A program made the translations under genes and the position numbers. Below are positions 5,238 through 59,868 of a stretch of 64,000 bases of DNA, piece by piece. The stretch spans positions 186,001 to 250,000 of the IMG/VR virus record IMGVR_UViG_3300032334_002567. One strand, given 5' to 3'. Below the pieces are notes generated by a model, which saw nothing but the letters and a program-made list of their open reading frames with translations, had not been told where the DNA came from and searched no databases. Numbering within the stretch: the first letter of the stretch is position 1; the number at the start of each line of letters is the position of its first letter.

Positions 5238-5242
5238 ATTTA

Positions 5243-33916: not shown

Positions 33917-34557
33917 ATATAAATATAAATCCATTTTATTGTTATGTAAAAAAAGAACACTTGTTTGGATATGATGAAAAAAGTGAAGGCTTTGAGAGTG
34001 TTCTTGTATTTGCTGCAAGAAGCGTACCAGCTAGAGCCCTTCTTTTTCACATAATGACAGAGGGTGGTGCACAAAGAGCTAATGTTCCAATATCAGCCTT
34101 AGTTCATAAAAAGGATGCAGTAAGTATACCACTAGATTATCTACAGCTATGGGATTGTTTTGGAAAAGAAATTAATGTTGTTGTTTTTGACTACTTAGTT
34201 AACAAAAGGTGTCAGGTTGTATTAAAGGACAAAACAGTTAATTGGGGAACCTATATGATGACATTTGACTGGGCGAACAACACGTACTCAGACACACCAC
34301 AAGACTATAAGAATGCACATCTAATAAAGCTTGATAATGGTTGTTTCGCTCTTCAGCCAAATAATAGAATATTTTGGAGGGATTCTAATTTTATTACTAA
34401 ACCCATAAATATTGGCGACGTACCTAAATATAAAGTGGATAATAAGATCTTCGTTTGCGAGGTATCAGATCGCTGGACTTCCCAAGATACGGATTGTTTT
34501 TATTACGATGTTATGGAAGAAAATGAACTTCAAAAAGTGGATGACAGAACAACCTGA
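33913..34557 (+). CDS. Conserved phage hypothetical protein
   Basis: LQLWDCF, YMMTFDW, LDNGCFALQPNNRI. Confidence 0.7.
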   Translation: MNININPFYCYVKKEHLFGYDEKSEGFESVLVFAARSVPARALLFHIMTEGGAQRANVPISALVHKKDAVSIPLDYLQLWDCFGKEINVVVFDYLVNKRCQVVLKDKTVNWGTYMMTFDWANNTYSDTPQDYKNAHLIKLDNGCFALQPNNRIFWRDSNFITKPINIGDVPKYKVDNKIFVCEVSDRWTSQDTDCFYYDVMEENELQKVDDRTT

Positions 34558-34879
34558 AGCAGACTATATTGGGAAAGTAGCAATATTTTATATTCCCGAG
34601 AATAAGTTAACAAAATCTGTTAGAAAAGAACTTCATGATTTTTTTGTTAAAAACTATAACGCATATACACACGAAGTAAGTAAGATACAAGGTTATTGGG
34701 TCAAGCAAAACAAACTAATTAAAGACAAACACGAAAGATATGAAGTTGCTTTTGACGGAGAGCAAAATCTTAAGAAATTTGTCGGTTTTTTGTCTAAATT
34801 GTGCGATACCATAGAGGAAGATTCTATTTATTTAATTGTTGGTGATGAGTCTTATCTGGTAAGACCTAAGAAAAATTAA
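34523..34879 (+). CDS. Hypothetical protein with leader MNFKKWMTE
   Basis: Start re-set to 34523. Confidence 0.6.
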   Translation: MNFKKWMTEQPEADYIGKVAIFYIPENKLTKSVRKELHDFFVKNYNAYTHEVSKIQGYWVKQNKLIKDKHERYEVAFDGEQNLKKFVGFLSKLCDTIEEDSIYLIVGDESYLVRPKKN

Positions 34880-34896
34880 ATTTAAACTATATTAGA

Positions 34897-35184
34897 ATGG
34901 AGGATAAAATGGCAATATTCCAGAAAATTAAAGATTGGTTTGAGAAGGTCTGTTACCCATGTTGTGAAGGCAATGAGTGCAAATGTAATACCGCACAAAA
35001 TTCTTTACCAGCACCAGAAGTTGTAGCAGATAATGTGGTTGATACCGTAGAAGAAACGCCAACACAAGCTGTGGAAGCACCAATTAAATTAGAACCTGTT
35101 AAAAATCCAAAGAAGGCTGCCGGTGCCCATAAAAAGAAACATGCCAAAAAGCCTCCAAAGCCCTCAAAGAGAAAAAAGAAGTAA
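34897..35184 (+). CDS. Hypothetical protein with basic C-terminal tail
   Basis: GGAGG RBS. Confidence 0.6.
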   Translation: MEDKMAIFQKIKDWFEKVCYPCCEGNECKCNTAQNSLPAPEVVADNVVDTVEETPTQAVEAPIKLEPVKNPKKAAGAHKKKHAKKPPKPSKRKKK

Positions 35185-35185
35185 T

Positions 35186-35443
35186 TTACTTATTTTCTTG
35201 TCTTTTGATTCTTTCGTGGTGTTGGTAAGTCATTTGACCATGATCTACTTCATCCTCATCGGCTTTTGGACCCAGCTTTTGTAAAGCATCTGCCGCAATT
35301 GGTGTAAAGTACCCAGCGGAGTAATGGCTCCTCATATACCCATCAGGATAGGCCCAGTGAGATATGCCTGCTCGTGCGGCTTTTTCAGATATTACTGGTA
35401 GCTCTTTTTTATTATCTGTGCAAAATTCTATAAATGTTTTCAA
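35186..35443 (-). CDS. Small protein with leader MKTFIEF
   Basis: AAGGA RBS; TAAATA upstream. Confidence 0.65.
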   Translation of the reverse strand: MKTFIEFCTDNKKELPVISEKAARAGISHWAYPDGYMRSHYSAGYFTPIAADALQKLGPKADEDEVDHGQMTYQHHERIKRQENK

Positions 35444-35493
35444 TTTTCTTCCTTTAAATGCTTTTTTTGTACTAGTTTAAAGCATACTTATTT

Positions 35494-35812
35494 ATGGAGC
35501 TAACAATGAATTTTAAAGATGTTATATTTTCGGACAATACCGCAGTGCCTCAAAGTCTGACAGTAACGAATGTTTCAGCATTTAATGTCTCTGATGAACT
35601 TAATATGTGCTCAATTTTGGATGTGATAAATAAAAAATTTGTTGATGGAACATACTTAGAAATAGTCTCTATGAATTCTTAGGAGGTCTATGCAGTGTTT
35701 TTTTCAAGTTTGCTTGTGTGTAATTGCTGCTTCTTTTTCTCTAGTTGTATTCTCCGCCTCTGTTGGCTTCGCAACCGCAGTTTATCGTTTTATTTTTAAA
35801 ATAGAAGAATAG
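35494..35812 (+). CDS. Two small ORFs (35494-35682; 35690-35812, hydrophobic 40 aa)
   Basis: AGGAGG RBS before the second; manual translation. Confidence 0.45.
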
Positions 35813-35813
35813 A

Positions 35814-36431
35814 ATGAACTTTTTTGAAATATTTGATAAAGCTTATTGTATCAATTTGGACAAAAGAAAAGATAGACTACTCAATTTCGAACTACAGGTT
35901 AAAAAGTATAATTTGGGGCCATATGCGAGGTTTAGAGCCTTTGATGGCTTTAAGATGCCCACAAACCTTGATAAAGGAAATGCAGGCCTAATTAAGTCCG
36001 TAATCGCTGTATTAAAAGAATGTTTAGATGAAGGTACCAGCAAGGTACTTATTTTAGAAGATGATTGTGAGTTTAAAGAAGATATTATAAATATATACGA
36101 ATATTTTAAATATGTACCCTCTGATTGGGACATGGTCTATTTTGGTGGAAATCACAATATCCATATTGGAAAGGAACCACCAAAAAGAATAAACGAAAAA
36201 ATAGCTAAACTACATTACACTTTCACTACTCATTGTATTGCAATAAAAAGGCATATGTTTGAGCCTATAATTCAAAAAATAGGTAATTATGAATCGCCAA
36301 TTGATGTTGCTTACCAACAGTTTCAACAAACACACAACGTATATGGATTTTATCCTTCTCTTGTAAAACAAGCCTCTGGATTTAGTGACATAAGGGGCCA
36401 GCATGTTGACTATGACTGGTTGATTACGTAA
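35814..36431 (+). CDS. Glycosyltransferase family 25-like
   Basis: CINLDKRKDR, LILEDD, DWDMVYFG. Confidence 0.85.
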   Translation: MNFFEIFDKAYCINLDKRKDRLLNFELQVKKYNLGPYARFRAFDGFKMPTNLDKGNAGLIKSVIAVLKECLDEGTSKVLILEDDCEFKEDIINIYEYFKYVPSDWDMVYFGGNHNIHIGKEPPKRINEKIAKLHYTFTTHCIAIKRHMFEPIIQKIGNYESPIDVAYQQFQQTHNVYGFYPSLVKQASGFSDIRGQHVDYDWLIT

Positions 36432-36911
36432 TTAGTCTGAAAAGACGGCACACCAATAAAGCCTGCCCTCTTTGTCTTCTTCTACACCGAATCCAACCCT
36501 CTTATAGCTTGTCCCTAGTATATTCCATCTATGCATTGGAGACCACATCCAAGCTTCAACAACCAACTTTTCTGTTTCTTGTCCCCAAGCAATGTTCTCT
36601 CCAACTAAACTCGAATCTTCATTAACCTTAATAAGGTCTGACATGCTTGAATGATACAAAGAATTCTTTTTAACCATTTTTTGTGCGTGTTTTTGTGCAT
36701 ATTCGCACAGTTTTTTGTCAAGTGTTAATGGTTTTAGTTTTCTAGAGGTTCTTTCTCGGTTATGAGCAACCAGAAGTTTTTCTTTTGTGCTAATAATTGG
36801 AGCACTGATTTCATCTGGTATCTGGGGCGTAGATTTTTGGGGCACTTCTTTTTTTTGGGAGCTGCATCCAATTAGAACAAAAAATGCGATTAAAATAATG
36901 ATTGTTTTCAT
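36432..36911 (-). CDS. CAP/SCP-domain lipoprotein
   Basis: Lipobox LIGC; HNRER, GENIA, WMWSPMHRWNIL. Confidence 0.88.
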   Translation of the reverse strand: MKTIIILIAFFVLIGCSSQKKEVPQKSTPQIPDEISAPIISTKEKLLVAHNRERTSRKLKPLTLDKKLCEYAQKHAQKMVKKNSLYHSSMSDLIKVNEDSSLVGENIAWGQETEKLVVEAWMWSPMHRWNILGTSYKRVGFGVEEDKEGRLYWCAVFSD

Positions 36912-36945
36912 ATTGTATTTATTAATGTGCTAAATATATATATTT

Positions 36946-37107
36946 ATGAAAACTTTTAATCAGTGGCTTCAAGAAATGGTGGGGTCAAATTCGATAACGA
37001 CTTGCAAGGACAGAAAAAATCCAAATTTTCAAATTTGGGGAGCTATGTCTGACTTGGGCTGCAAGCCGGAAAAGAAAATTCCAACAATGAAATTCAATAA
37101 AAAATGA
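36946..37107 (+). CDS. Small protein with leader MKTFNQWLQE (53 aa; missing from the ORF track)
   Basis: Manual translation; TATATATAT just upstream; ATGA overlap with the PLA2 gene. Confidence 0.65.
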   Translation: MKTFNQWLQEMVGSNSITTCKDRKNPNFQIWGAMSDLGCKPEKKIPTMKFNKK

Positions 37108-37595
37108 AACTAAAATTTACAGAGTGGCTAAAATTAGAAGAAATCGATACTCGTAATCTTAAAGATTACATGAAGACTAAGTTTGATCTAAACATAGACG
37201 AATTACCTCTTAACCCTATGGACTACGCTAGTAGAGCTGAAACGGAACCAGAGGGTCAAGGATTAGACACTCAAGCACCTTGGTACAGATACGGAAACTA
37301 TTGCGGACCAGGACCGGCATTAGCTAGTTCATGTAATAAACTTGCAACAGGAGATAAGCTTCCTCCTGCGAAGAACAGTGTTGACAGTCAATGTAAGAAT
37401 CATGATGTTGATTACTGTAAATGTGGAGTAGATTGGAAGGCTGGATTGCCGGGTGGTGGCACACCTTGTTCAAAAGAAGCCGATAAAGATTTTGTTTCAG
37501 GCCTTCAAAGATTAAGAAAAAAGATAAATCCAGAAGAAAGAAGGATAGCGGATATTATTAGGACTTATTTTACTTGGAAGAAAATATTCGGTTAG
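37104..37595 (+). CDS. Phospholipase A2-like protein with head-targeting-like leader
   Basis: YGNYCGPG Ca2+ loop; DSQCKNHDVDY catalytic His-Asp; downstream ADKDF. Confidence 0.8.
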   Translation: MKLKFTEWLKLEEIDTRNLKDYMKTKFDLNIDELPLNPMDYASRAETEPEGQGLDTQAPWYRYGNYCGPGPALASSCNKLATGDKLPPAKNSVDSQCKNHDVDYCKCGVDWKAGLPGGGTPCSKEADKDFVSGLQRLRKKINPEERRIADIIRTYFTWKKIFG

Positions 37596-39088
37596 TGATT
37601 TCTATTTTCTACTTGAGCTAGTTGTTGTCCAACAATTGGTGTTCTTGTTTGCTTTCTTAACATCTCAGGAACAAATGGTACATCGTACTTCTTAAGTACC
37701 TCTTTAAGGTTATTCGCATAAGGTGCTAAACTTGGACTTTGTAGGTCGTTATTTTTGATTGCCTTTATCACATTATCGATGTTCTGCTTGGTTGGCGGGA
37801 AGTTCAATTCTAAGTCGCCGGAATCTGTTTTCTTAATTAAGTGTTCATTGCTAAAACCTTCTGCGTTTCTAAAAAAGGAACCATCTTTATTTAAAAGCAA
37901 TACTTTATTATTATAGTAATAAGTTGCGGGGTCATGTTTAACCATAATTCCTTCATAAAGTTGAGACTGATTTCCATACCATTTTACCACAACTATTGTA
38001 TTGATTAGCTTGCTTAAAAAAGATTGAATTTTTCTTTTAAATTCCTTTTCTTTACGTATTTTCTTTAGTCCTATTACAGTGTCTCTTTGTGTTTGTAATA
38101 TGGACATCAAAGCTTCTTTTTTATAAGAACTCGGCAGTGTTTTTATTATTTCTCGGATGTAACTTCGGGTTAGATACAAATTAGGAGAAACCCTTAAAAA
38201 ATCAGCGGGTCTCAAATAATCTGTGTAGAATCTCTGATACATTAAGCTCATTGCAGGATCGGCTGCAGAGAAATTAAAGCCATTTACTTTTGACCCAGAT
38301 TTTTCTTCTTCTTGATTCATTTTCGCCACAGAAGCCAATAAATGATTGTATATTTCTAAAGCGGTTTTTGTGTCGTTATTTTTTGTAAGGCTGTAGCCGT
38401 TTGGTCCTTCAAAATATATTTCATAAACATTTTTTAATTGCTTGCCTTGAAAGTTTATGCTTGATGGTTCGATACCTACTTTGTATTCGTTGCCTTTTAT
38501 TTCAAACTTTGCTTCATAGCCTCCATGGCTGTCTGGTGGGTTTTCTTCTTCATGAGAAATTCTACGTTCTTCCTGTTCTGATTCGTGGTCACTCATTTTT
38601 TCTTGTACACAGGCGTCTATTGCTTCATCTCGGGCTTTTCTTATAGCTTCTTCCATTTCTTCTCTTCTTTCATCCATTTTATCTCGCCAATCTTGTAGAG
38701 CACTATCATATTCAGACTGAGCACTTTCTAGTTCTTCTTCCCAATTAGCAACTGCCTCTTCATGTTCCTCATCTGATGACGAGTCTTCTCTTTCTGGTTT
38801 GGGGTTTTCTTTTTCCCATTCCTCTCCATTTATGTGTTCAAAGTCTGGGTCTTCATCTGGCTCATCATATATGGGTTCGTCATAAACATCTTCATAACTA
38901 ATGTCATCACCCGCATCCATACAATCTTCATAAGCACTATCATGATCAAATTCTTCTCCTTCGAATTCTTCTGATTCACCAGGTCTTTTTTTTAGTTTGA
39001 TTTTGTCGAGTGGTAATTGAGAGGCACTACGCAAACCTTCCCAGAATATTTCGCCGTTATTACTTAGCCATTCACTGAAGTTGAACAT
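37592..39088 (-). CDS. Paralog-family protein with leader MFNFSEWL and a long acidic insert
   Basis: D/E-rich N-terminal third; shared FEGPNG...IYNHLLASV...GFNF...YL.P domain. Confidence 0.75.
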   Translation of the reverse strand: MFNFSEWLSNNGEIFWEGLRSASQLPLDKIKLKKRPGESEEFEGEEFDHDSAYEDCMDAGDDISYEDVYDEPIYDEPDEDPDFEHINGEEWEKENPKPEREDSSSDEEHEEAVANWEEELESAQSEYDSALQDWRDKMDERREEMEEAIRKARDEAIDACVQEKMSDHESEQEERRISHEEENPPDSHGGYEAKFEIKGNEYKVGIEPSSINFQGKQLKNVYEIYFEGPNGYSLTKNNDTKTALEIYNHLLASVAKMNQEEEKSGSKVNGFNFSAADPAMSLMYQRFYTDYLRPADFLRVSPNLYLTRSYIREIIKTLPSSYKKEALMSILQTQRDTVIGLKKIRKEKEFKRKIQSFLSKLINTIVVVKWYGNQSQLYEGIMVKHDPATYYYNNKVLLLNKDGSFFRNAEGFSNEHLIKKTDSGDLELNFPPTKQNIDNVIKAIKNNDLQSPSLAPYANNLKEVLKKYDVPFVPEMLRKQTRTPIVGQQLAQVENRNH

Positions 39089-39091
39089 AAT

Positions 39092-39403
39092 TTATTCCTC
39101 TACAAAAAAAGCTTTCTCCCACCAGTCATCGTTTATCTGTTGGAAGCCCGCAGCCAAATATTCAGCAGTTTTGTCTTTGCTAACAAATTTCGCATGACCT
39201 GCACCGTCATAAGCAAGGTACATTGAAGTATTTGGAATTCTTGCAATAAAATTGGATCCCTGATTCATTACCTTCCCAGATTGATTTATCGTGGGTGGAG
39301 ATTTCTCAAACTGCATATCAACTGCAGCTACAATTTGATCTTTAATTTTCACCGGATGCGGCAAAGTGAAGCTTGCCATTTCTATAAATTGTTTAAATTC
39401 CAT
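39092..39403 (-). CDS. Small protein with leader MEFKQFIE
   Basis: TATATA 4 nt before the ATG. Confidence 0.65.
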   Translation of the reverse strand: MEFKQFIEMASFTLPHPVKIKDQIVAAVDMQFEKSPPTINQSGKVMNQGSNFIARIPNTSMYLAYDGAGHAKFVSKDKTAEYLAAGFQQINDDWWEKAFFVEE

Positions 39404-39442
39404 AATTTATATATTAACAATAGAAAAAAAATGGGGGTATGA

Positions 39443-40176
39443 TTGTTTACTTTAGCATTATTGGCAATTTTTATCTTTATTTTAGCTATACTTATAGGCC
39501 CAATTGTTTTCTTGGTTCATAAGGTAGACTTTGTCCCAAACTACATAAAATTTACTATTTCTTTTGTTTCAATTTGTTGCTGTGCTTATATGATAGCGGT
39601 AGTGCCAGTTCCTATATTGCAACTATTCTTTTTAATTTCTATAGGCTTTATCTTAGCTGCAAGGGGCAAACCTCACATAAAATAGTGCAGATGTATTGCG
39701 TAAACCAAGCAAAGAAAAAAGTGCCCCATCATGCAAAGAACCAAGAATTTGCATGTATTTGCCATTGGGCTAGTGTACTCTAGTTGCTTTACTATTTGAT
39801 GTACACGAATCTTGTCAAGCTTATTTTGACATATTAAATAGTTGAGCTGAACATCTGTGCAATCACCACTAACGTATCTTTTTGCAAGGTTGTATTCTAT
39901 ATCTGTATTTTCCATTTTAGGCCTCAAAATATTGTAGTATTGAATGCCTAAATATATCAAAATGGAGGAAGAATGGAAATATTAACTAATTTTTGGCTTT
40001 GGCTAGCTGTATTCATTGTTTCCGGTGGCTACATTCTTTATATCAAAAAGAAAGAAAGAGAAAACGTACAGGCACAGTTTGTTATTACCGGTACGTTGCT
40101 TATTGTGTTTTATGCGGTATGCTTTTGTTCAGGAATATGCACTATTTTAAATTTTATTCGCAACTGGTTTTTTTAA
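39443..40176. CDS. Three small membrane-protein ORFs (39443-39685 +, 39673-39960 -, 39973-40176 +)
   Basis: Hydrophobic segments. Confidence 0.5.
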
Positions 40177-40184
40177 GGTAAAAT

Positions 40185-41420
40185 ATGAATTTTAAACAAT
40201 GGCTCCTTACAGAAGAGCGTCAATCAATGGGTGCATCTATCCCCATGCCAGATGAAGTACAAATTCTATCCAATCTGTTTAGTAGTTTTGGAGCTAAATT
40301 GTATGCTGTTGGTGGAGCTATAAGAGACTACTTATACCATATATTCCACGATAGACATATTCCTTACAACCCCAAAGACGTAGATTTAACCACAGATCAA
40401 CCACCAGATCAAGTTACAAGAATACTTAGCTCTCCAGCAGCAGTTCAGCATGGGATTAGGGTCTTACCTAAGGGAGAAAGCTTTGGAGTTATCAGTGCTA
40501 TTATAAATGGCAAAGAATTTGAGATCGCAACCTTCCGAACAGAAGTCTATGATGCTGCCACGGGTGATGGCAGAAGACCAGATAGTGTTCAATACAGTAC
40601 AGCCGCTGAAGACGCCAAGCGTAGAGACCTTCACATAAACGCATTGTTCTATGATCTTCATAGCAAAGAAATACATGATTACAATGTAGATGAGAATGGA
40701 GAGGGAGAAGGATTTAAGGACATTAGGAACAAAAAAGTTAGAGTTGTAGGAGATCCTTTTGAGAGATTTAGAGAAGATAAGCTTAGAGTTTTAAGGCTTG
40801 TCAGATTCTTTTGTAGGTTTAATGAGGACGTGATAACCAGTCACTTAGATTCAAGAACATTATCTGCCGTAGATAACTTCAAGGATTTGAAGGGAGTTAG
40901 TGGCGAAAGAATAGCAAATGAATTTATTTCTGGACTTAAGACTTGTAAGAGTACAAAAAACTACATTTTAAGCTTCAAGTCTTTGGGGTTGATACCAACA
41001 ATATTTCCCGGCTTAAATGTTAATACTTCTGAAATGGATGCTATGGACTCTTCAAGAAACTCAATAGCAGTCACTGCTTTTTTACTCAGAGACAATGATA
41101 TAAAAGTTATTAAATCTAAGCTAAATTCACTCAAGTACTCTAACGAATTTATAAACACACTTTCTTTGGTGCTCATGGCAGCTTACAAATTAGATAAGTC
41201 TAATTTTATTCGTTTGTTAAGAATGAGAGATAATCTAAATGATAGCTTAAAAAGTTCGCTTGTTGAATTCGGTAAAATAAGTGGTCTGGAAAGAGAAATG
41301 AGTCATTTTGTACATTACACTCAAGTCACAAAATCAGAAGACTATATGCATCTACAGAATGAAAAAAGAGGAGAGAAGATGAGTGAAGATGAATACGAAA
41401 ATTATAAGGAAAATTCATGA
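40185..41420 (+). CDS. cca: Class II tRNA nucleotidyltransferase (CCA-adding enzyme) with leader MNFKQWLLTEE
   Basis: VGGAIRD, DVD, EIATFR.E, RRDLHINAL, FREDKLRVLR; poly(A) polymerase GRRF signature absent. Confidence 0.88.
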   Translation: MNFKQWLLTEERQSMGASIPMPDEVQILSNLFSSFGAKLYAVGGAIRDYLYHIFHDRHIPYNPKDVDLTTDQPPDQVTRILSSPAAVQHGIRVLPKGESFGVISAIINGKEFEIATFRTEVYDAATGDGRRPDSVQYSTAAEDAKRRDLHINALFYDLHSKEIHDYNVDENGEGEGFKDIRNKKVRVVGDPFERFREDKLRVLRLVRFFCRFNEDVITSHLDSRTLSAVDNFKDLKGVSGERIANEFISGLKTCKSTKNYILSFKSLGLIPTIFPGLNVNTSEMDAMDSSRNSIAVTAFLLRDNDIKVIKSKLNSLKYSNEFINTLSLVLMAAYKLDKSNFIRLLRMRDNLNDSLKSSLVEFGKISGLEREMSHFVHYTQVTKSEDYMHLQNEKRGEKMSEDEYENYKENS

Positions 41421-41908
41421 ACTCTTTCATTTCTTGGCTAGAAAATAGAGATAGAAAAGAACTCATACTAATGAGAGGTGTTTCATCATCGGGTAAAAGC
41501 ACTGTAGCTAAAAGTTTGGTTGGCGGTGGAAAGATATTCTCTACAGATGACTTTTTCATGCAGGGAAATAGGTATGTTTTTGACCCAAAAAATATTGGTA
41601 CAAACCACAAACTAAACCAGAGCAGAACAGAAGAAGCTATGAAACAGGGTATTAGTCCAATTATAATAGATAATACTAATACTGAGTCTTGGGAGATGAA
41701 ACCTTACGTTTTATTGGCCGATAATTATGGATACTCAATAAAAATAGTAGAACTACCACCTTTAGACATAGAAGAGTTGATGAGACGACAAGAGAGTAGA
41801 AGATCTTTTAATAAGGCTTTGCCTAGAAAGTCCTTGGAGCGGGCGATAGAGCGCTATCAACACAATGTAAGTGTAGACGATATTCGAAATAGTTCGCCTC
41901 CTTTTTAA
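41417..41908 (+). CDS. AAA_33/N4BP2-like P-loop polynucleotide kinase with leader MNSFISWLE
   Basis: RGVSSSGKST, STDDFF, IIDNTN, WEMKPYV; ATGA-coupled to cca. Confidence 0.82.
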   Translation: MNSFISWLENRDRKELILMRGVSSSGKSTVAKSLVGGGKIFSTDDFFMQGNRYVFDPKNIGTNHKLNQSRTEEAMKQGISPIIIDNTNTESWEMKPYVLLADNYGYSIKIVELPPLDIEELMRRQESRRSFNKALPRKSLERAIERYQHNVSVDDIRNSSPPF

Positions 41909-41910
41909 TT

Positions 41911-42498
41911 ATGTGTTTATTTGATGCCTTAATCCTTTTATATTGTTCTCCAATTATACTGCTTTATTTTTTGATGTGCTCAACCATACCTTTCATCAGG
42001 GTAGGAGAAATAAAGAAGGGTAAGGGTGTAGATTTGTTTATTTGCCGGGATATAATCCACTCAGACTTTATTTTTAAATCTAGTCTTTGGAGTGAAGTTT
42101 TTGAGCCAAAAGGCGAATACATTAAAATCGGTTGGGGAGACAGAAAAATATTCTTAGAAACAAAGGTTTGGGCTAATCTAAGAGCCTTTGATGTAATGAC
42201 AGCATTTGTCGGTATCAATAAAACAGTTTTAAGAGTAGAGTTTTTGGACACAGTGCCAGAAGGCTGTGTCAAAATGGAAATAGATGACTGCCAACTAGAA
42301 GTGATTAAAATCCACGTTAACCAATCTTTTAGTGGTAAACCTATAAAGAAGCAAAGTTGGCACTGTGAACGTGGAGACTTTTACGAGTCTAAGTTGAGAT
42401 ACAATTGTATAACAAATTGCAATAACTGGGTTAATCGTGCTCTCTTCGTATGCAGAGCAACCAATAGAGTTTGGTGTCCACTAAGTTTATACTTTTAG
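41911..42498 (+). CDS. DUF2459-like protein
   Basis: IHSD, IGWGDR, TNCNNW. Confidence 0.7.
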   Translation: MCLFDALILLYCSPIILLYFLMCSTIPFIRVGEIKKGKGVDLFICRDIIHSDFIFKSSLWSEVFEPKGEYIKIGWGDRKIFLETKVWANLRAFDVMTAFVGINKTVLRVEFLDTVPEGCVKMEIDDCQLEVIKIHVNQSFSGKPIKKQSWHCERGDFYESKLRYNCITNCNNWVNRALFVCRATNRVWCPLSLYF

Positions 42499-42692
42499 TG
42501 CTTTTTCTTTTTGTGATTTTTCTTTTTATGTTTTTTCTTGAGGCTGTTGCGACTAGCCTTTACATAAACTTGATCCGACCCAGTTTGATTCGCTAGTGGA
42601 GGATGAGTTCCTATACCGCCATATTGGGGTGGGTAAATTCCAACTATTCCTTCTCCAAGTCTGCTTTTTAGAAATTCAAAAAATGTTTTCAT
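42495..42692 (-). CDS. Small basic protein with leader MKTFFEFL
   Basis: LGE after the leader; K/H-rich tail. Confidence 0.65.
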   Translation of the reverse strand: MKTFFEFLKSRLGEGIVGIYPPQYGGIGTHPPLANQTGSDQVYVKASRNSLKKKHKKKNHKKKKH

Positions 42693-43000
42693 TGGTTAAA
42701 TACGTTCTTTCCTGTTGAAGCTTGCATTTTGCTTGTTTCTTCTACTAGCTGTTCAAATAAAGCTAACATTCTGGGATTTCTTGCAACATACCTTAGTAAA
42801 GGAACATATGTGTTTGACTTCTCTCCAATTTTATTTGAAATTCTATTTAGAACTCTTGCAAATGCATTTTTGTCCTCGTGCCCGGTATTTAGCTCGTTAT
42901 CATCAGGGTTAGCAGCGGCCTGTGTTTGTCTATTAGTCATTTGAGGGTTTGCTACAATCGGTTGTGCATTCATATTTTGAACTAATTCATAGAAATTCAT
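42689..43000 (-). CDS. Hypothetical protein starting MNFYELV
   Basis: AAGGA RBS; TATATA at 43027. Confidence 0.6.
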   Translation of the reverse strand: MNFYELVQNMNAQPIVANPQMTNRQTQAAANPDDNELNTGHEDKNAFARVLNRISNKIGEKSNTYVPLLRYVARNPRMLALFEQLVEETSKMQASTGKNVFNQ

Positions 43001-43132
43001 TTTATTCCTTTTCTGTGTGGACAAACTATATATGCTTAAGGGAAAAAATCAAAATGACAGACTTAATGATATTAAATTATTTGGCCTTTTTTGCGTTTGT
43101 TTTAGTTCTATTAACTTGGATACATTTCAACA

Positions 43133-43567
43133 ATGATTAAATTTAGTGTATGGTTAGAAAACAAGATTAAAGCTATTCGAACAGCTAGTGATGCTGAGTT
43201 GGACCAAGTTGTCAAGGGAGCACCTTACACTTCTCCTATGTTAAGAAGAATTAACTATTTAACAAATAATGGGAAACCGTTCGATCCTTCTAGTCCGGTA
43301 AATGATTACTTTCAACATTATGTTGGCGTTAACAAAACAAGATCTAGAAAAGCAAATAAAGATAGAGCCTGGGCTTTAGGGCTGGAAGTGCCAGAAGAAG
43401 ATAGAGAAATAATTCGGGTCGGGGGCATTGAAAAACCCAGCAGTGCGGTTCCTTATCTTAAACCAGATCACATAAAAACAATTACTAGGCTGGGTGCAGG
43501 AAAGCAAAAGCCCAGAGATGCACAAAGATTTGTAGGTACTTACAAAAGATTATTTGGCGAAAGATGA
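43133..43567 (+). CDS. Hypothetical protein with leader MIKFSVWLE
   Basis: Coupled to the next gene. Confidence 0.65.
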   Translation: MIKFSVWLENKIKAIRTASDAELDQVVKGAPYTSPMLRRINYLTNNGKPFDPSSPVNDYFQHYVGVNKTRSRKANKDRAWALGLEVPEEDREIIRVGGIEKPSSAVPYLKPDHIKTITRLGAGKQKPRDAQRFVGTYKRLFGER

Positions 43568-44280
43568 AAACATTCAAACAATACCTAGAAGATCGTCAAA
43601 TAATGATTTTTTCTACTAGACCGGTAGAGTTATATCATGGTTCAAACACTGGAGCCGATAATAGTGCTTTAAATAGCTTGTTAAAAGATGGCATTAAACC
43701 AACAGTAGCTCAAGGACATGGCCAAGGATCAGGTTTTTATGTATGGTCAGATAAAAACAGTGCCATCAACCACACTAAAGCCATAACCTCAGGCTCTATT
43801 ACAACTAATGCTAAGACAGACGGTCTTCCAATGATAGTAACAGTCGAAGCCATAGCAGACCCAGAAAAATGGGATTTAGATTATGAATCTAATAAACGAT
43901 CAATCGTTAATTGGCTACATGATAATTTTGAAAAACTTCAACCGCTATTGAAACCAGAAGACAAAGTTCAACTAAGGTCTAAACAGAATAGAGAAATCGT
44001 AAACAATAGAGATGAAAAAATAATGTCAAAGGGTGTAAGTGTTTCTTTAGAGACTTACAAAACACTATATGCTCAGAGTGAACCTAATATTCGGGACGGA
44101 GAGGTTATAGCACCAATTATAAATAAGCTACAACAAAAAGACCCTCAAACTGTACATAAATTCGAAGAACTATTTTTTGCCAACATGAAGCCAGGGGTTG
44201 CAATAAAGTATGTTGGCAGTGAAATATTAAGACCCAAAAGAATAGAGATATTTAAAGATGGTCAATGGGTTCAAGCTTAA
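43564..44280 (+). CDS. ADP-ribosyltransferase-like (H-Y clade) protein with leader MKTFKQYLE
   Basis: LYHGS...SLLKDGI...GSGFYV...A pattern of PARP/diphtheria-toxin-type ARTs. Confidence 0.6.
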   Translation: MKTFKQYLEDRQIMIFSTRPVELYHGSNTGADNSALNSLLKDGIKPTVAQGHGQGSGFYVWSDKNSAINHTKAITSGSITTNAKTDGLPMIVTVEAIADPEKWDLDYESNKRSIVNWLHDNFEKLQPLLKPEDKVQLRSKQNREIVNNRDEKIMSKGVSVSLETYKTLYAQSEPNIRDGEVIAPIINKLQQKDPQTVHKFEELFFANMKPGVAIKYVGSEILRPKRIEIFKDGQWVQA

Positions 44281-44636
44281 TTAGGGAATCTATTTCTGAT
44301 GTGGTCAACGTCTTTCATTATATCAGTGTTACACCTAGTCCAGTTTTTAAGGTGCCCGAAAAATAGATGACAATTAAAGCTTTCGCTTTCACAAAGAGAA
44401 ATTAGATTTTCTGGGTCAAGTTCTCTGTCAGGATCTAGATGAACTGGGACTATATGATGTGGCACAACATTCTTGTCGCTTCCGCATATCGCACATCTTG
44501 GATTATTTTCTAGATGTGCAAGTCTAACTTTTCTCCATTTTGAAGATCTTGGATATGCTAGAACCTGCACCTCATCTACAGAAAGGCTCTGTATCTGATC
44601 CCGAAAACAAAATAATTTTTTTAAGAACTCTATCAA
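44277..44636 (-). CDS. HNH endonuclease
   Basis: CAICG...PHHIVP...NLISLC...CH. Confidence 0.85.
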   Translation of the reverse strand: MIEFLKKLFCFRDQIQSLSVDEVQVLAYPRSSKWRKVRLAHLENNPRCAICGSDKNVVPHHIVPVHLDPDRELDPENLISLCESESFNCHLFFGHLKNWTRCNTDIMKDVDHIRNRFPN

Positions 44637-44648
44637 ATGAAACTTTCC

Positions 44649-45032
44649 TTATTCTGGTTTTGAAGAGTAGTGATTTCCACTTCTTGTCATTCTTGACCAT
44701 GAAGAGAAATCAGAAGATCTTAGCTTGCTACCTTTTTCAGCTAATCCAATAGCTTTACTAACTGCTTCTTTTATTTTGGATTCTTCTTTTAATCCATATT
44801 CTAAAGTTCTTTTAATTTCAAGAAAGACTTTTAGCAACTCACTATTTAATTCTACAAAGTTTGCTATTCTTTCGTCTTTTTCATCTATCATGTCTGCGAT
44901 TTGACGCAAATGATGTGTATGAGAAACCTCTGATTTGAGTGTGCCCGCTGGAGGAGTGCGTGGAAGGCCAATATCCCCGGTCGGCGGTACATTTTCGGAT
45001 GATGATTCTAAAAATTGCTCAAAACTTTTCAT
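44649..45032 (-). CDS. Hypothetical protein with leader MKSFEQFLE
   Basis: AGGAG RBS; TATATA at 45058. Confidence 0.7.
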   Translation of the reverse strand: MKSFEQFLESSSENVPPTGDIGLPRTPPAGTLKSEVSHTHHLRQIADMIDEKDERIANFVELNSELLKVFLEIKRTLEYGLKEESKIKEAVSKAIGLAEKGSKLRSSDFSSWSRMTRSGNHYSSKPE

Positions 45033-46305: not shown

Positions 46306-48601
46306 ATGCTTGATTTGACCGGTCATGCTATGGATCACGGATGGTTTCCGCATAAACCCGAAACATGGAAATATAAATTTGCAACACTCCGCAAGCCAGT
46401 TGTTATGTTGCATTTGCAGAATTCTAAAGAAGTTGAAATTCCTGTTCCTGCTGGACAAACAGTGAAGCTCGTTATGGTGTCAAGATTTGGCGATGTTGGA
46501 GTCACCGAGGATCTAAATGCGGAGAACGGTTATGGAGTTCGACTGCCTTTAGACGATCTGTGTGATTGGAGAGCACAACCATAAATGAAACCTAAACTAA
46601 TTGAACTTTTGGAAGAAATCATTGAATCTGCTGATTCTTATTACATAGAATCAAATCCAAGCGTTCCAGTAATACTGGAAAAAATAGTTTTTAATGCTGC
46701 TAGTATGATTAAGATATTATCAAAGGATAATAAAAAAATATCTATCACAGAGGGTGACACTCTGGCAAATATCCGAACTACAGATTCTTATCGTGAAATG
46801 CCAAGTGGTCCGCCGCCTTCTTTATCTAAAAATGCAGAGATTAAGAGTTTGAAACTTACAGATAAAGAAATTGTGGCGATTGAGTGGTGTGTGGAGCAGT
46901 GGACAGGTATAAAAAGAGCAGAGACTCTCCGTAATCTATTAGAAAGAATAAAGAAAAATGAACGATAACAATGAAGTAGTTACTGTGACACTATCGCTTA
47001 CCAAACATCAGTGGAAAGACATTATCCAACATATTATGAACGACGCTAGTATGTTAGAAATGGGATTATGCGCCCAAGCTGGTCGTGATGCAGTAATGAG
47101 AATAACATCTAACGCACTAGAAATGGCAAACAAAATTAAAGATGCCACTGGTGTTGACGTAGACTTGGCAGAATGGAAATTTATGTATGGAGAAAGAATA
47201 AAGGATAAATAATGAATAACCTACCAGAAATAGACAAAATATCAGTAATGAATCTGAAACCAGACGATATACTAGTTTTTAGTACCTATGATAAAATAGC
47301 TAGTAGTGTTTATTCAAGAATAGATCAAAAAATAACCGATTGGAAAGCCCAAAACAATATAACAAACAAACATTTGATACTAACTTCTCTAAAACTAGAA
47401 GTATTATCAAAGGAACAGACTCAAAAACTGGAAAATAACTAATGACTAAAGAAAATGAACCTGTAGCATGGCACGTTTCCGATAAAAACGGTCAGGTGTG
47501 GGCTTGTGTTGAATCTGAGGATGAAGCACTTCAGATAGCTAGAGATTTCTCAAATACTGATGATAATCATATGGTATATTCGTCTTTTCCTGTTTATCGT
47601 CAGATAACCCTTACTGATGAGGAAATTGAGGCGATTGAGGCGGCTATTGACCGATTTAGAGATTGGGTCAATGGATTTGATGATGATGAACGTGCCACTA
47701 TCCTTCGTAATCTATTAGAAAGAATAAAGGATAATGAAAACTCTAATAACAATTGAAGTTGAAAATGAAATCGGCAATCCTTCTGTTGAAGAAGTAAAAT
47801 CCTTTGTTAAACAAATCTTAGAAAAAGGACTTGTTGGGAATTTTGACATATACAAGTATTGCCCAATGAGTGGAATATCGCTAAGAGTTTTAAGCACAGA
47901 AATTGAACGATTGAAACTTACAGATAAAGAAATTGAGGCGATGGCGTATTTTGCACATTTTTTCCCAGTATGTGCAGCAGAGATTGATGCAGCATCAGAC
48001 ATTCTTCGTAACCTATTAGAAAGAACAAAGGATAAATAATGATTACCTATAAAAATAAAAAGATCAAAATTTTACCCAAATCCGAATTACCAACAGTATT
48101 GGAAAAACATAACCAATCTGATATACAAGTTCCATTTCATCAGTATAATAATGATTTGATGGAGCATTTATGTTCTTTTGTGGACGATATGGAAAAGTAT
48201 GATCCTAAGAATGAATATGATACAGTTTACAGCTTTTATCATAATAATGAATGGGGAGTTATTGCGTTCAATCCAAATGTTCAACAAAATAAAACCTACT
48301 TAGTAAAGAGTACAAATGACCGAAACTAAACAAAAAAGCTGGACTGATCTTTTGGGCAAACCTCAAACATACGATCAGAGATTTTACAGGAGAATAAATA
48401 ATGACCCCAGAAGATATACATGATTTGCGATCAGTTGTTAATGAACAATTTGACTATATTAATAGACTCATGCCACTGGTTTATGCTGCAAACAAAGACC
48501 CTAAAGATTTTCAAACAATATATGAATCCATAGTAGATTGTAATAAAGTTATGATGGAGATAATTAATGGACCAAGTGGAACTATTGAGAAAATGATATG
48601 A
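46306..48601 (+). CDS. Array of small hypothetical genes (46306, 46585, 46958, 47212, 47442, 47734, 48039, 48401)
   Basis: Tightly coupled ORFs; three share an LTDxEI...LRNLLER C-terminus. Confidence 0.65.
46848..48041 (+). repeat. Dispersed direct repeats at gene 3' ends
   Basis: CGTAATCTATTAGAAAGAATAAAG at 46930 and 47706, variants at 48007 and 47191; TTGAAACTTACAGATAAAGAAATTG at about 46849 and 47911. Confidence 0.8.
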
Positions 48602-56762: not shown

Positions 56763-57412
56763 AAAAATATATCGCTATTTTATCGCTGTTACTAATTATT
56801 ATTATTGGATATTTCTGCATAGAAAATCACGAATCATATAGCAAAGAAGAAATTACTTTCACTATAGACAAACCCTATTTATCAACAGTAAAGGGTCTAG
56901 CAACAAAGAACTCTTTAGAGAAAATGGTAGAAGAAAATGATGGTATGCTTGTTTACAAGAACTGGGAGAATTTTGATATTGAAGTGCCCCAAAGAATATT
57001 GAGAATAAAAGAATATAAAGTACATGGCAAACTCAGATTTACGGTAGAAAAAACAGATCATGATCTTGGACAAATTAAATTACCATTTATACAAGAAATA
57101 CATTTAGACAACCACATCTTTGACATAAGCACTAAACTAGTTTCACCACAAAAACACGTACCATCCTACAACAAGACCATACAAATAAGTCCGCTCTTTG
57201 AAGACAACAATAAGATCGCTCAAAAAACTCATGTAAAAATAAGCAGTGAACTTAAGATAAAGAAATTAATACCAATATTTTTCAAAAAATTTATGGACGA
57301 TAAGGTAGAGCAAACCAACCAAAAAGATATAGACCAACTCAAGAACAATATATTAAATATATCTAATCAAAAAAGTATATTAACTTTTAAGCTACAACCT
57401 CAAGGGATTTAG
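56759..57412 (+). CDS. Membrane-anchored hypothetical protein
   Basis: N-terminal hydrophobic helix; ATGA-coupled to the peptidase. Confidence 0.65.
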
Positions 57413-58481
57413 AAGGCTCGTTTTGTAGCCATGTAGAAAAAGGCCCAGAAGGCTTATAGGTTTTAAGTACCTCTTCAAAGTTACGACTATAAGCCGCTGC
57501 ATTTGTGGGATGAGAGATACCCCTCATAGTAGCCATTCCTGATGGAAGAGGTATCGAAACTCCTGTTGCTTTTATATTTTCTATTGCATGTAATACTTCA
57601 TCTATTTGGCTCTTGGTAGGAGCCGCAGTGAGCTTAAATTTAGGAAACTCACCTTTAATTGAGGTATTTCTTATTATATCATTATGGTGTACATCTATCA
57701 TGTTCAGTTTTTTATCTTTTAAAACAAACATCTTAACAAAATTGGTAAAAGACAGTGGCGGTCCAACTGCAACTATAAAACCTACAACTTGTTTCATACT
57801 ATTTGACGCATGATCTACGCCATTAAAAGCAACAATTCTATTTACCATTTTATTTAAAAATGCCGTTGCTGCTCTATCGACCATTTTTTCTTTTCTTGCA
57901 TCATTTATTCCTTTATCTGCTTCTTTATTGTTGTCTGCTATTTGCCCCAAAACATTTTTCTTATCTGGACCACTCAACCCAGACATAAGTTGTCTAATGT
58001 ACGGTTTCTTTAAGTACAGCTGTGAATTCACCCTGAGATAACCAGCAGGTTTTAGATAATCTTTGTAAAATTTTCTATACATTAGAGCCATCTTAGACTC
58101 GGCCGGGGTGAAGACAAATCCTTGTACATTTTTTTCGACATCTACCATTTTTACTACCGATGCCAGCACATGGTCATAAACGCTTTTTGCAACGCCGGGA
58201 TTATTTTTATTTGCTGTAAGGAATCCAGTTGGACCATGAAAACTTATGTCATAAACTTTTTCTAAGATTTTTCCAATGAATTTTTTATTTTGTAAAGATT
58301 TTATGTCTACGGTGTAATCGTCTTCGCCTATCTTAAACTTGCTAACATAGTTTGCTTGACCTCTGTTGTCAAAAAAACTCGTCAAATTAACTTTATCCAA
58401 TGGTAGAATGCTTGTATCTCTTGCAACTTCCAGATAGTCACAAAGAATCTCTTCAAACTCGAACCAATTTCTAAATTCCAT
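57387..58481 (-). CDS. Paralog-family protein with leader MEFRNWFEFEE
   Basis: FHGPTGF...VYDHVLASV...GFVF...ESKMALMY.KFYKDYLKP. Confidence 0.75.
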   Translation of the reverse strand: MEFRNWFEFEEILCDYLEVARDTSILPLDKVNLTSFFDNRGQANYVSKFKIGEDDYTVDIKSLQNKKFIGKILEKVYDISFHGPTGFLTANKNNPGVAKSVYDHVLASVVKMVDVEKNVQGFVFTPAESKMALMYRKFYKDYLKPAGYLRVNSQLYLKKPYIRQLMSGLSGPDKKNVLGQIADNNKEADKGINDARKEKMVDRAATAFLNKMVNRIVAFNGVDHASNSMKQVVGFIVAVGPPLSFTNFVKMFVLKDKKLNMIDVHHNDIIRNTSIKGEFPKFKLTAAPTKSQIDEVLHAIENIKATGVSIPLPSGMATMRGISHPTNAAAYSRNFEEVLKTYKPSGPFSTWLQNEPSKSLEVVA

Positions 58482-58551
58482 GCTTTTCCTAATATTTTCT
58501 ATTATTTTGTAATATTTTATATACACTTTCTCTTATACATTTAGGTGTAAT

Positions 58552-59868
58552 ATGGAACATATATTTCAAAAAGAACAATTTGGCGAAGATTGGTTCACCT
58601 CTCCTGATCTTTATTCCCGTATGGTTAAAAAAGCAATAAATGGGAGCATATTTGTTGAGGTGGGTTCTTGGAAAGGCAAATCTTCTTCCTATATGGCCAC
58701 AGAAATAATTAACTCAAATAAGGACATACAGTTCTTTTGTGTTGATACTTGGGAAGGCAGTATAGAACATGAAGGAATGGAATTAGATAATCTTTATGAA
58801 ACTTTTTTAAATAACATGAAACCTTTAGAGTCTTATTATTTTCCTTTAAAAGTCACATCAATAGAAGCAAGTAAAAAGTTTAAGGACAATTCCTTAGATT
58901 TTGTATTTTTAGATGCTTCTCACGAATATGAAGATGTTAAAGCGGATATCTTGGCGTGGCTACCCAAAGTAAAACCGGGCGGAGTTCTCGCTGGTCATGA
59001 TTATTACCAAGAAACTGATTACTTTCCGGGTGTAAGTAAAGCAGTAGATGAAGTTTTAAACAACTTTGAAATTGTTGATAATTGTTTTGTGTTTTACAAA
59101 GACAAGCTAAGAAACTTCCCATCAGTTAATTTTATAAGCATAGAAGAAAGCCAACACAGAAGAGATTTATTAAAAAAGAAGTTCAATTCTTATGGTATCA
59201 AAAATACAACAGGATATGTTTTTGAAAGATATAAAGAAGGTGATTGCAACCTATTTGGAGAAATGATTATTGATCTAAAAACAGAAAGTAAAGGACCGGT
59301 AACATCTCACTTAAAAGCAATCAAAGATTGGTATAATAATACGAACGAACCTTATGCATTTTTCTGTGAAGATGATTTAAGCCTAGAAACAGTTAAATAT
59401 TGGAACTTTACTTGGGAAGAATTCTTTGCTCGACTCCCCAAAGATTGGGGTTGTGTTCAACTTGCTTGGATACGTGATGAGTTTTTCAAGTTCGGATACA
59501 AACTAAGAAACAGATGCTGGTGTGATTGGTCTGGGTGTGCCTACCTATTAAGCAGAGAACACGCTAAGAAGCTAATAGAATCATACCACTATGACGATAA
59601 CTTTTACCTAGACTTCAAAGGATCAGACACAGATGCAAGAGAAGATTGGGCTAAAGTACCAGTTATAGAAACAGTAATCTTTTCCCCAGTTACAAAGGTG
59701 TACTCTTTTCCAATGTTCGTTGAAGACGTAATTCTTTGTAACTCTACTTACCAAGAAGGCCAAGGAGATATGCACTTTGGCTCACATCACAACACAATAG
59801 AATTTTGGAAGAATATAGGTAAATATGCTTCTTTAAATGAACTTGTTGATCATTCTATTTTGCACTAG
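58552..59868 (+). CDS. SAM methyltransferase (Methyltransf_24-like) fused to a GT25-like domain
   Basis: VEVGSWKGKS, FVFLDASH, GGVLAGHDY; then SHLKAI, FCEDD. Confidence 0.82.
   Translation: MEHIFQKEQFGEDWFTSPDLYSRMVKKAINGSIFVEVGSWKGKSSSYMATEIINSNKDIQFFCVDTWEGSIEHEGMELDNLYETFLNNMKPLESYYFPLKVTSIEASKKFKDNSLDFVFLDASHEYEDVKADILAWLPKVKPGGVLAGHDYYQETDYFPGVSKAVDEVLNNFEIVDNCFVFYKDKLRNFPSVNFISIEESQHRRDLLKKKFNSYGIKNTTGYVFERYKEGDCNLFGEMIIDLKTESKGPVTSHLKAIKDWYNNTNEPYAFFCEDDLSLETVKYWNFTWEEFFARLPKDWGCVQLAWIRDEFFKFGYKLRNRCWCDWSGCAYLLSREHAKKLIESYHYDDNFYLDFKGSDTDAREDWAKVPVIETVIFSPVTKVYSFPMFVEDVILCNSTYQEGQGDMHFGSHHNTIEFWKNIGKYASLNELVDHSILH

Follow-up and report, generated by a model that had tools for sequence, protein, structure and literature searches.

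The window analysed in the present study is a 64,000-nucleotide stretch (bases 186001-250000) of one 381,443-bp IMG/VR virus contig, IMGVR_UViG_3300032334_002567, which has a G+C content of 36.5% and a completeness rating of 79%. Its interval 43133-44280 had been presented in a preliminary description as a single gene for a tagged ADP-ribosyltransferase (ART)-like protein. An ART-like protein with an N-terminal tag is indeed encoded there; however, the interval consists of two open reading frames (ORFs) on the plus strand, ORF A (43133-43567; 144 aa, starting with MIKFSVWLENK) and ORF B (43564-44280; 238 aa, starting with MKTFKQYLED), and ORF B alone is ART-like. The two ORFs meet in an ATGA junction, at which the ATG of ORF B overlaps the TGA of ORF A, in keeping with the described coupling to another tagged ORF. 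The LYHGS and GFYV motifs that had been noted after the leader MKTFKQYLE were found at residues 23-27 and 57-60, respectively, the latter within GHGQGSGFYVW. ORF B encodes a single-domain, stand-alone protein and is the sole convincing copy of its family on the 381-kb contig (E 1.4e-84 in a profile search of its own genome). The standard genetic code sufficed and the genes at the locus are unbroken, and scans for promoters and terminators gave background levels. Pfam and PHROGs held no family for ORF A or ORF B, blastn and tblastn searches against 50,697 phage records gave no match for either ORF, and a profile search of PDB sequences with ORF B returned one chance match to an OTU protein (E 0.7).

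Regarding the fold of the ORF B product, an AlphaFold2 model was built on an alignment of 30 metagenomic homologues (25-92% identity) collected by a word-based protein search, and reached a mean predicted local distance difference test score (pLDDT) of 86.9 and a predicted template-modelling score (pTM) of 0.79. In the N-terminal half of the model, a strand at residues 21-28, which carries H25, is followed by a helix (31-42), a low-confidence glycine-rich loop, in which residues 50-54 have a pLDDT of less than 50, a strand at 58-61 with Y59, and a helix (64-76). The remainder comprises strands 89-96 and 103-105, an excursion from residues 109 to 210, and strands 213-216, 226-231, and 234-237, while residues 4-15, at the N-terminus, form a separate helix modelled with lower confidence.

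With few exceptions, the top 50 matches in either structure search of the PDB (Foldseek and VIA) were ARTs. Foldseek retrieved Tpt1 (probability 0.93-0.96, ranks 2-3), PARP1/2/3/14/16, tankyrases, exotoxin A, cholix, and the pertussis and cholera toxins. VIA gave Z scores of 7.4 for Tpt1 (root-mean-square deviation of 3.4 over 85 residues), 7.2 for the Rhs toxin TreX, 7.1 for PARP16, 7.0 for PltA and pertussis toxin S1, 6.3 for diphtheria toxin, 6.1 for Arr, and 6.0 for DarT. Among viral proteins in BFVD, Gp610 of Bacillus phage G (E 6e-5) and three further proteins of that phage matched, together with ART-PolyVal-like proteins and viral PARPs, and the ESM Atlas returned DUF3990 and PARP clusters. 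The structural alignments span residues ~18-238 yet cover only ~100 residues, which fits an ART core with an unaligned insert. Because the match lists were uniform across four structure libraries, we regard the predicted ART fold of the ORF B product as secure, and the fold that had previously been proposed from two short motifs is thus supported by a predicted structure and by fold searches in which PARP, DarT, and Tpt1 all appeared.

An exhaustive profile search with ORF B yielded a family of 288 cluster representatives at E <= 1e-3, 69 of which matched at 1e-30 or better. The family takes two forms, stand-alone proteins of ~220-300 aa and internal domains in proteins of 1,500-6,400 aa, and its homologues also occur in metagenome-assembled genomes (MAGs) labelled as DPANN archaea, Bdellovibrionota, and others. 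Conservation was counted in an alignment of 105 diverse members with 23-53% identity to the query. Motif I (LYHGS; 43630-43644, plus strand), identified from the family alignment and the model, lies on strand 1 and contains the presumed NAD-binding His, H25, which is kept in 104 of the 105 members; position 26 is Gly or Ala, and position 27 is Thr or Ser in 100 members. Motif II (43714-43743, plus strand), placed on the same grounds, forms the glycine-rich loop and strand 2 and reads G51-H-G53-Q54-G55-S-G57-F58-Y59-V60. Its residues are kept in 97 (G51), 92 (G53), 103 (Q54), 97 (G55), 103 (G57), and 92 (F58) members, and position 59 is always aromatic, with Tyr in 84 and Phe in 21. Outside these motifs, F39, G43, and A67 are each kept in more than 90% of members and H70 in 79. 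The segment WDLDYE (43870-43887, plus strand) follows strand 4 and contains D106 and E108, the only columns that are invariant in all 105 members and, by virtue of this invariance, the candidate catalytic acids. Strand 5 carries K215-Y216-V217-G218 (44206-44217, plus strand; family alignment and model), with K215 kept in 103 members, Y216 in 104, and G218 in 102. The family signature reads [LVF]-[YF]-H-[GA]-[TS] on strand 1, G-x-G-Q-G-x-G-F-[YF]-V, D-x-E after strand 4, and K-Y-x-G.

There was no above-threshold match to the Pfam families PARP (PF00644), ART-PolyVal (PF18760), DUF3990 (PF13151), PTS_2-RNA (PF01885), or ADPrib_exo_Tox (PF03496). A Pfam scan of the 105 members gave recurrent sub-threshold matches, all of which belong to the ART clan (DUF3990 in six members, ART-PolyVal in four, and PARP in one). 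Among the H-Y ARTs, the ORF B family thus forms a branch of its own that has not been catalogued. The H-G-S of motif I, the G-F-Y of motif II, and the lack of an ADPrib_exo_Tox match agree with the preliminary description, in which the protein had been assigned to the H-Y type and not to the R-S-E clade of T4 Alt. Elsewhere on the contig, a weak match to the family at 260871-261254 (E 6e-6) is broken by five internal stops, and a match limited to motif I at 308336 belongs to another ART-like ORF, which is untagged and lies outside the window at contig 308348-309040 (L036:1513-2205). This 230-aa ORF has no leader, starts with MERLYHGT, has Y-L-T in motif II and a faint PTS_2-RNA signal (E 0.048), and may be another H-Y ART-like protein that is made in the cell.

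The leader of ORF B, MKTFKQYLE (43564-43590, plus strand), is read by us as a T4-type capsid-targeting sequence (CTS) on the basis of F4, Y7, L8, and E9. In the T4 genome (NC_000866), ipII and ipIII start with MKTYQEFIAE and ipI starts with MKTFKEFTSTTTPVSTITE, read as MKTFKEF, and the first five residues of ORF B are identical to those of the internal protein IPI. The first 10 residues of IPIII are sufficient for incorporation into the head, and the T4 CTS acts in targeting mainly via residues 4 and 7 and in processing via residues 8 and 10 (PMC9026906). The same review raises the possibility that the CTS is an evolved means of loading proteins of diverse kinds (PMC9026906). In its N-terminus, ORF B resembles the CTS-tagged proteins of T4-type heads, the propeptide of which (10-19 residues) is similar to MKTYQEFIAE/MKTFKEF and has aromatic residues at positions 4 and 7. 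The word "tagged" in the preliminary description was well chosen in that the leader closely matches the T4 sequence at the positions needed for targeting and processing.

ORF B is not the only gene on the contig with such a leader. The pattern M-x(1-2)-F-x-x-[WFY]-[LIFVM] occurs at the first Met of 35 of ~520 crude gene calls, with ~1.4 expected from the amino-acid composition, and at 8 of 1,525 internal Mets. An alignment of the leaders anchored at the Phe gives the consensus M-(x)-[NST]-F-K-[EQN]-[WFY]-[LI], and an acidic residue lies within 1-4 positions after the core in 29 of 44 leaders. The positions conserved genome-wide, 4, 7, and 8, coincide with the functional positions of the T4 CTS, and a Glu then follows. 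Since the codons vary at the conserved Phe (TTT/TTC) and Leu (CTA/TTA/CTT/TTG/CTC), it is the peptide that is under selection, and neither the DNA nor the RNA. Beyond the leader, no relationship links the tagged proteins, which include a CCA-adding/PolyA_pol enzyme, an AAA_33 kinase, a Nudix hydrolase, a phospholipase A2 (PLA2)-like protein, the ART-fold protein, and many without a family. The window holds 13-14 leader-bearing genes, at 20495, 34523-45032, and 57387-61115. A pattern scan delimited the second of these groups as an island of 11 leader-bearing ORFs on both strands (34523-45032), seven of which start on the plus strand at 34523, 36946, 37104, 40185, 41417, 43133, and 43564, with four on the minus strand at 37592-39088, 39092-39403, 42495-42692, and 44649-45032. 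Judging from these sequences, the leader-bearing genes look like a large predicted set of head cargo.

IPI, IPII, and IPIII of T4 resemble the ORF B product in that residues 4 and 7 are aromatic, residue 8 is aliphatic, and a Glu comes soon after, and they resemble the ORF A product in being small and basic. In contrast, T4 has three such leaders whereas ~35 genes carry them here, sizeable enzymes included, the distance to the Glu is variable here, and the protease was not recognised on the contig. Among the 151 short homologues of ORF B (<=400 aa) listed from other contigs, 48 keep the leader. Other stand-alone members have other short N-terminal motifs, such as MKLLLENWRKYL-x-EE and MNWYKIAQ. 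Alternative recurrent N-terminal peptides were noted in homologues P0111, P0115, P0131, P0140, P0147, P0152, P0157, and P0163, as well as in P0059, P0068, and P0121, and peptides like MKLLLENWRKYL-x-EE and MNWYKIAQ may be the targeting leaders of other phage lineages. In most close homologues, R-Q-M-M-M-F-S-T, with three Met in a row, comes right after the leader (query residues 11-16); some gene callers start the protein at this Met run, which could be the start of an untagged isoform or the mature N-terminus.

The large terminase subunit (TerL; contig 4213-6039) is of the T4 gp17 type and matches 2,852 phage records, most of which are T4-like. The best match (49% identity) is in LR756511.1, a 595-kb uncultured phage record that is the nearest complete relative and that presumably stems from a huge-phage survey. 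A Peptidase_S77 protein (E 6.7e-28) is encoded in LR756511.1 among the large ORFs immediately downstream of TerL, and we read these ORFs, from their order and size, as a portal-protease-scaffold-capsid block. The same record has 35 leader-bearing genes, many of which start with MKTF-x-[EQ]-W-L-E, including a tagged ORF of 1,076 aa a few kb past the presumed head block. The leader and the S77 protease that would remove it co-occur in this phage. On the contig itself, no match was obtained with the Pfam models S77, Gp23, and Portal_T4, or in tblastn searches with T4 gp18-23 and with the two S77 proteins of LR756511.1. PHROG scans of the large ORFs at 0-20, 20-40, and 360-380 kb revealed no capsid protein or prohead protease; they did reveal the neighbours of the terminase, a head-tail adaptor, and baseplate and tail genes. 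The baseplate, tail, and adaptor genes indicate a contractile-tailed phage, and the head module presumably falls within the ~21% of the genome that is missing. Outside the window, at contig 348024-361238, a 4,404-aa ORF lies a few kb upstream of the baseplate-wedge and tail genes; it has no Pfam match and does not contain the ART-like domain of ORF B.

A different account of the leader needs to be considered here, namely, that it is not capsid-targeting and is a shared element for translation initiation or stability, marks the proteins for degradation, or directs them to some other compartment, so that ORF B would act in the cell after its synthesis. That no prohead protease or capsid gene was seen on the contig is consistent with this account, as are the leaders on housekeeping-type enzymes such as the CCA-adding enzyme and the location of the Glu at position 9 instead of 10. 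However, the variation in synonymous codons rules out an RNA element, and the leader lacks a hydrophobic core like that of secretion signals, opens with the same five residues as IPI, and is conserved at the positions mapped in the T4 CTS. The T4-type terminase of this phage and the S77 protease of its nearest complete relative also point to the head, and the occurrence of the same domain within giant proteins of an ejected type suggests an alternative route to the same destination. A function of the leader other than capsid targeting is, therefore, the less probable option, to which we give something like one chance among several.

Regarding these giant proteins, both of the ORFs from IMG/VR loci that were scanned with Pfam start with a PhageMin_Tail (tape-measure) domain, one of them also holds a separate ADPrib_exo_Tox (R-S-E) ART, and the embedded versions of the ORF B domain begin at approximately query residues 17-20. 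Injection has been predicted for polyvalent virion proteins, in which no modifying domain is commoner than the ART (PMC5512222); these proteins and their ARTs have also been described elsewhere (PMC9503650). One catalytic domain that is equipped with lineage-specific N-terminal peptides or fused into a giant protein is the pattern expected of a virion-delivered effector. The best Foldseek match of all was a chain of the pre-ejectosome of cyanophage A4 (9k3a chain B; E 2.6e-4), which we take to be gp27 because of its size, residue numbering, and LYHGT and GSGTYF motifs. In Anabaena phage A-4L (KF356198; 20116-25269, minus strand), gp27 contains SLYHGT ... GSGTYF at residues ~1420-1470. It recalls ORF B in these motifs and, by the structure search, in an ART-like fold, and is a virion-internal ejection protein; it belongs, however, to another H-Y family and is a structural podovirus protein of 1,717 aa. 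Membership in the ORF B family was rejected because the hhalign probability was 27% and neither WDLDYE nor KYxG was present. The main text of the structure paper on the A4 pre-ejectosome does not mention ADP-ribosylation.

The catalytic acid requires separate consideration. The preliminary description had stated that a catalytic Glu was not obvious by eye; the front of strand 5 indeed lacks an acid, whereas the alignment now yields D106 and E108 as candidates. The ART triad is drawn from strands 1, 2, and 5, in a sheet with the halves 4-5-2 and 1-3-6 (PMC7955679). Of the motifs that characterize the H-Y-[EDQ] clade, H-x-[ST] on strand 1 and the Tyr on strand 2 are present in ORF B, whereas the front edge of strand 5, where motif III has Glu, Asp, or Gln, reads as described without an acid. 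The invariant D-x-E is at the opposite base of the ~100-residue excursion from strand 5. Since strands 4 and 5 are adjacent in the sheet, the two bases of the excursion should be close to each other, and D106-x-E108 in the model could serve as a displaced catalytic motif. As leads only, we presume a likeness of the K-Y-V of strand 5 to the E-Y-I of PARP1 and diphtheria toxin, and of the spacing between motif II and the acid to that in Arr and cholera toxin.

The lack of an evident acid at the front edge of strand 5 may also be taken to suggest that ORF B has retained the ART fold and lost transferase chemistry, in which case it would be an internal-head or ejection component or a decoy that binds NAD or ADP-ribose. 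The best Foldseek match being a structural A4 chain to which the main text of the paper assigns no enzymatic role, and the presence of the pseudo-PARP domains of TASOR and PARP13 among the VIA matches, are in line with this suggestion. On the other hand, two invariant acids together with near-invariant His, Gln, Lys, and Tyr in sequences that are otherwise divergent (identity of only ~25-40%) form an active-site pattern and not that of a scaffold, and mono-ART PARPs with H-Y-I, H-Y-L, and H-Y-Y triads work without the Glu of strand 5 (PMC7955679), which shows that a strand-5 acid is not obligatory. We consider a non-catalytic protein unlikely.

The family-specific insert of ~100 residues between strands 4 and 5 (43888-44193, plus strand) was delimited with a separate model. 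Modelled alone, residues 109-210 had a pLDDT of 91.6 and the order helix-helix-strand-strand-strand-helix-helix, and no convincing solved relative was found by Foldseek (E >= 0.14) or VIA (best Z, 4.0). A double-stranded RNA-binding domain-like identity for the insert was indicated by faint rows (Foldseek E ~0.3) and was not used. The loop between strands 4 and 5 is the target-recognition loop in other ARTs, and a role for the insert, which occupies this position, in target selection is a natural guess. The insert also bears on the view that ORF B is an NAD+ glycohydrolase or phosphorylase that transfers nothing to macromolecules and that alters host NAD+ pools or NAD-derived defence signals on entry. 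ART-fold toxins that degrade NAD match structurally (e.g. MbcT, Z 5.0), and some phage ARTs have been proposed to be NADases or NAD+ phosphorylases (PMC9503650). However, no specific similarity was found beyond the general ART background, a large conserved insert at the position of substrate recognition argues for a macromolecular target, and a loss of NAD+ at entry would harm the phage as much as the host. NAD+ consumption as the sole activity consequently appears very improbable.

A more specific alternative arises from the neighbouring genes. A CCA-adding/PolyA_pol-type nucleotidyltransferase gene (40185-41420, plus strand; Pfam E 1.6e-23; PHROG tRNA nucleotidyltransferase; leader MNFKQWLLTEE) shares a 4-nt overlap with an AAA_33 P-loop kinase gene (41417-41908, plus strand; Pfam E 1.3e-16; PHROG ATPase/polynucleotide kinase; leader MNSFISWLENR). 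ORF B may accordingly be viewed as a cytoplasmic Tpt1/KptA-like enzyme for the repair or modification of nucleic acids, which acts on RNA or DNA ends and not on protein and works with the CCA-adding enzyme, the kinase, and a metallophosphoesterase in mending tRNAs that host defences have cleaved. In favour of this view, Tpt1 leads the VIA matches (Z 7.4) and occupies ranks 2-3 in Foldseek, tRNA nucleotidyltransferase, kinase, and metallophosphoesterase genes are neighbours in a block that is syntenic in a 92%-identical relative, a substrate that bears a phosphate would be in keeping with the near-invariant K215 and the glycine-rich loop, and phages with KptA homologues for RNA repair have been reported (PMC9503650). 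Since the repair-type neighbours carry the leader, such a function is compatible with packaging. Against this view, the alignment with Tpt1 is confined to its ART lobe (chain residues 91-180) and its RNA-binding lobe has no counterpart, motif II has Tyr or Phe and not the His of the H-H-h clade, and the PTS_2-RNA model gave no match. Moreover, the domain is equally frequent in giant proteins, and those examined are of the tape-measure type and far from repair genes, while a 71%-identical relative has glycosyltransferases and an RNase T-like gene as the neighbours. A cytoplasmic repair enzyme is, in our opinion, a rather doubtful identity for ORF B.

Taken together, we consider it probable, though by no means certain, that ORF B is a stand-alone, T4-type-CTS-tagged member of an uncatalogued phage family with an H-Y-type ART fold, and that its product is an effector that is packaged and injected. 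Packaging, cleavage, ejection, the use of NAD+, the identity of the catalytic acid, and the target of the ORF B product are inferred. Several points weigh against this interpretation. ORF B has no sequence match in Pfam (E up to 0.1), PHROG, or the PDB, the structural Z scores are middling, at most 7.4, with no single strong match, and the front of strand 5 reads P-G-V-A-I-K-Y, without an acid. Tyr59 is replaced by Phe in 20% of members. The MAG homologues, which came from a species-genome collection, have no leader. On the contig, Pfam and tblastn searches did not reveal an S77 protease, a gp23-type capsid protein, or a T4-type portal. In the leader, L8 is present; however, the Glu is at position 9, not 10, and P3 is Tyr, whereas we take cleavage sites of T4 gp21 to have Leu or Ile there.

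In the mechanism that we propose, the leader would bind the ORF B product to the scaffolding core of the assembling prohead, and an S77 (T4 gp21-type) prohead protease would clip the leader after a nearby Glu. The mature enzyme would then remain in the head with the DNA and be ejected into the cell at infection. There, it would ADP-ribosylate a host macromolecule with NAD+ before phage gene expression, and the aim would be takeover or counter-defence.

Among the systems compared, T4 Alt shares with ORF B a phage ART fold and is annotated in the T4 capsid, entering the host with the DNA; ORF B has a T4-type targeting leader, and its phage has a T4-type terminase. The differences are marked. Alt belongs to the R-S-E (Alt/VIP2) clade (PMC5512222), whereas ORF B has His on strand 1 and F-Y-V on strand 2, and the features that define the Alt/VIP2 family, an Arg on strand 1, S-T-S on strand 2, and E-x-E before strand 5, place ORF B outside it. 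Alt is ~680 aa by its annotated coordinates, while ORF B is 238 aa with a 9-residue leader of the internal protein type, and Alt has known targets. The ART-PolyVal/Tox-ART-HYD2 family (PF18760) is similar in that its H-Y-type ART occurs in giant phage proteins predicted to be injected (PMC5512222), as do relatives of ORF B. It differs in having an Asp in strand 5, whereas the acids of the ORF B family follow strand 4, with a 100-residue insert between the two, and ORF B, being stand-alone and tagged, lacks the multi-domain architecture that defines polyvalent proteins. DUF3990 (PF13151; BC2332, PDB 2aua) gave the commonest sub-threshold Pfam signal (6 of the 105 members) and a Z score of 5.6 for 2aua; however, these signals are below the curated thresholds, and a family without a known function gives no mechanism. 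Tpt1/KptA matches the ART core most closely in structure (Z 7.4; Foldseek probability up to 0.96), whereas the H-H-h clade motif and the additional RNA-binding lobe that characterize it are both missing from ORF B, and PTS_2-RNA gave no match. The best-supported description is, therefore, that of a protein similar to T4 Alt in its role, closest to Tpt1/PARP in its fold, and similar to ART-PolyVal in its deployment, which does not pass as a member of any of these families.

Regarding ORF A, its leader-bearing product is basic (pI 10.0) and has four homologues, all of which are close. The 92%-identical relative keeps the pairing of ORF A with the ART-like gene, whereas the 71%-identical relative lacks ORF A and has a DUF2459 gene ahead of the ART-like gene. 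Because its homologues are few and the adjacency is not kept, we read ORF A as a separate cargo of the kind that the T4 internal proteins represent, independent of ORF B and not an obligate partner, and we do not claim that it forms a functional pair with the ART-like gene as a partner, chaperone, or immunity protein. The order of the block in the 92%-identical relative is the PLA2-like gene, CCA-adding enzyme, kinase, 144-aa ORF, ART-like gene, a 115-aa ORF, and metallophosphoesterase, with the 115-aa ORF in the place of an HNH gene in the window. This HNH endonuclease gene (44277-44636, minus strand) is convergent with the ART-like gene, with which it shares 4 nt at the 3' ends. The DUF2459 gene lies at 41911-42498 in the window and directly upstream of the ART-like gene in the 71%-identical relative (locus L042, 5391-5984); DUF2459 thus recurs as a neighbour of the ART-like gene.

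The leader-bearing CCA-adding enzyme and AAA_33 kinase could be a packaged tRNA-repair pair, and a further tRNA-nucleotidyltransferase-like ORF is present at contig 340477-341964. A leader-bearing ORF of 163 aa (37104-37595) has a match to Phospholip_A2_4 (parvovirus-type) with an E value of 2.4e-5, just above the Pfam cut-off, and its gene is also kept in the 92%-identical relative. At 46585-48039 of the window, at least three adjacent small ORFs form a local paralogous family, the members of which share an internal L-T-D-[KE]-E-I-x-A-[IM] and a C-terminal L-R-N-L-L-E-R-[IT]-K.

Head-packaged ARTs beyond T4 Alt were previously predicted from domain fusions and gene neighbourhoods. The present locus links an uncatalogued ART-fold family to the head by a simple, readable peptide label. 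As a tentative extension, which we hold as a possibility and not as an expectation, huge phages of the T4-terminase lineage would use the CTS as a general address label for dozens of head-loaded enzymes, and the ORF B family would represent a new active-site variant. In such phages, the virion may deliver a ready-made kit for takeover, counter-defence, and tRNA repair together with the DNA. The active site may consist of the His, the Tyr or Phe, a displaced D-x-E on the side of strand 4, and the Lys of strand 5, and the private insert may select the target, perhaps a phosphate-bearing nucleic-acid end and not a protein. If the label works as it does in T4, the injected effectors of uncultivated huge phages may be listed from sequence alone, and some of the unannotated small genes of these phages would be explained. 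The ORF B family would then stand as a defined candidate for an enzyme that modifies the host or counters its defences early in infection, and the unusual placement of its acids and Lys would pose a concrete question on catalysis and target choice in ARTs.

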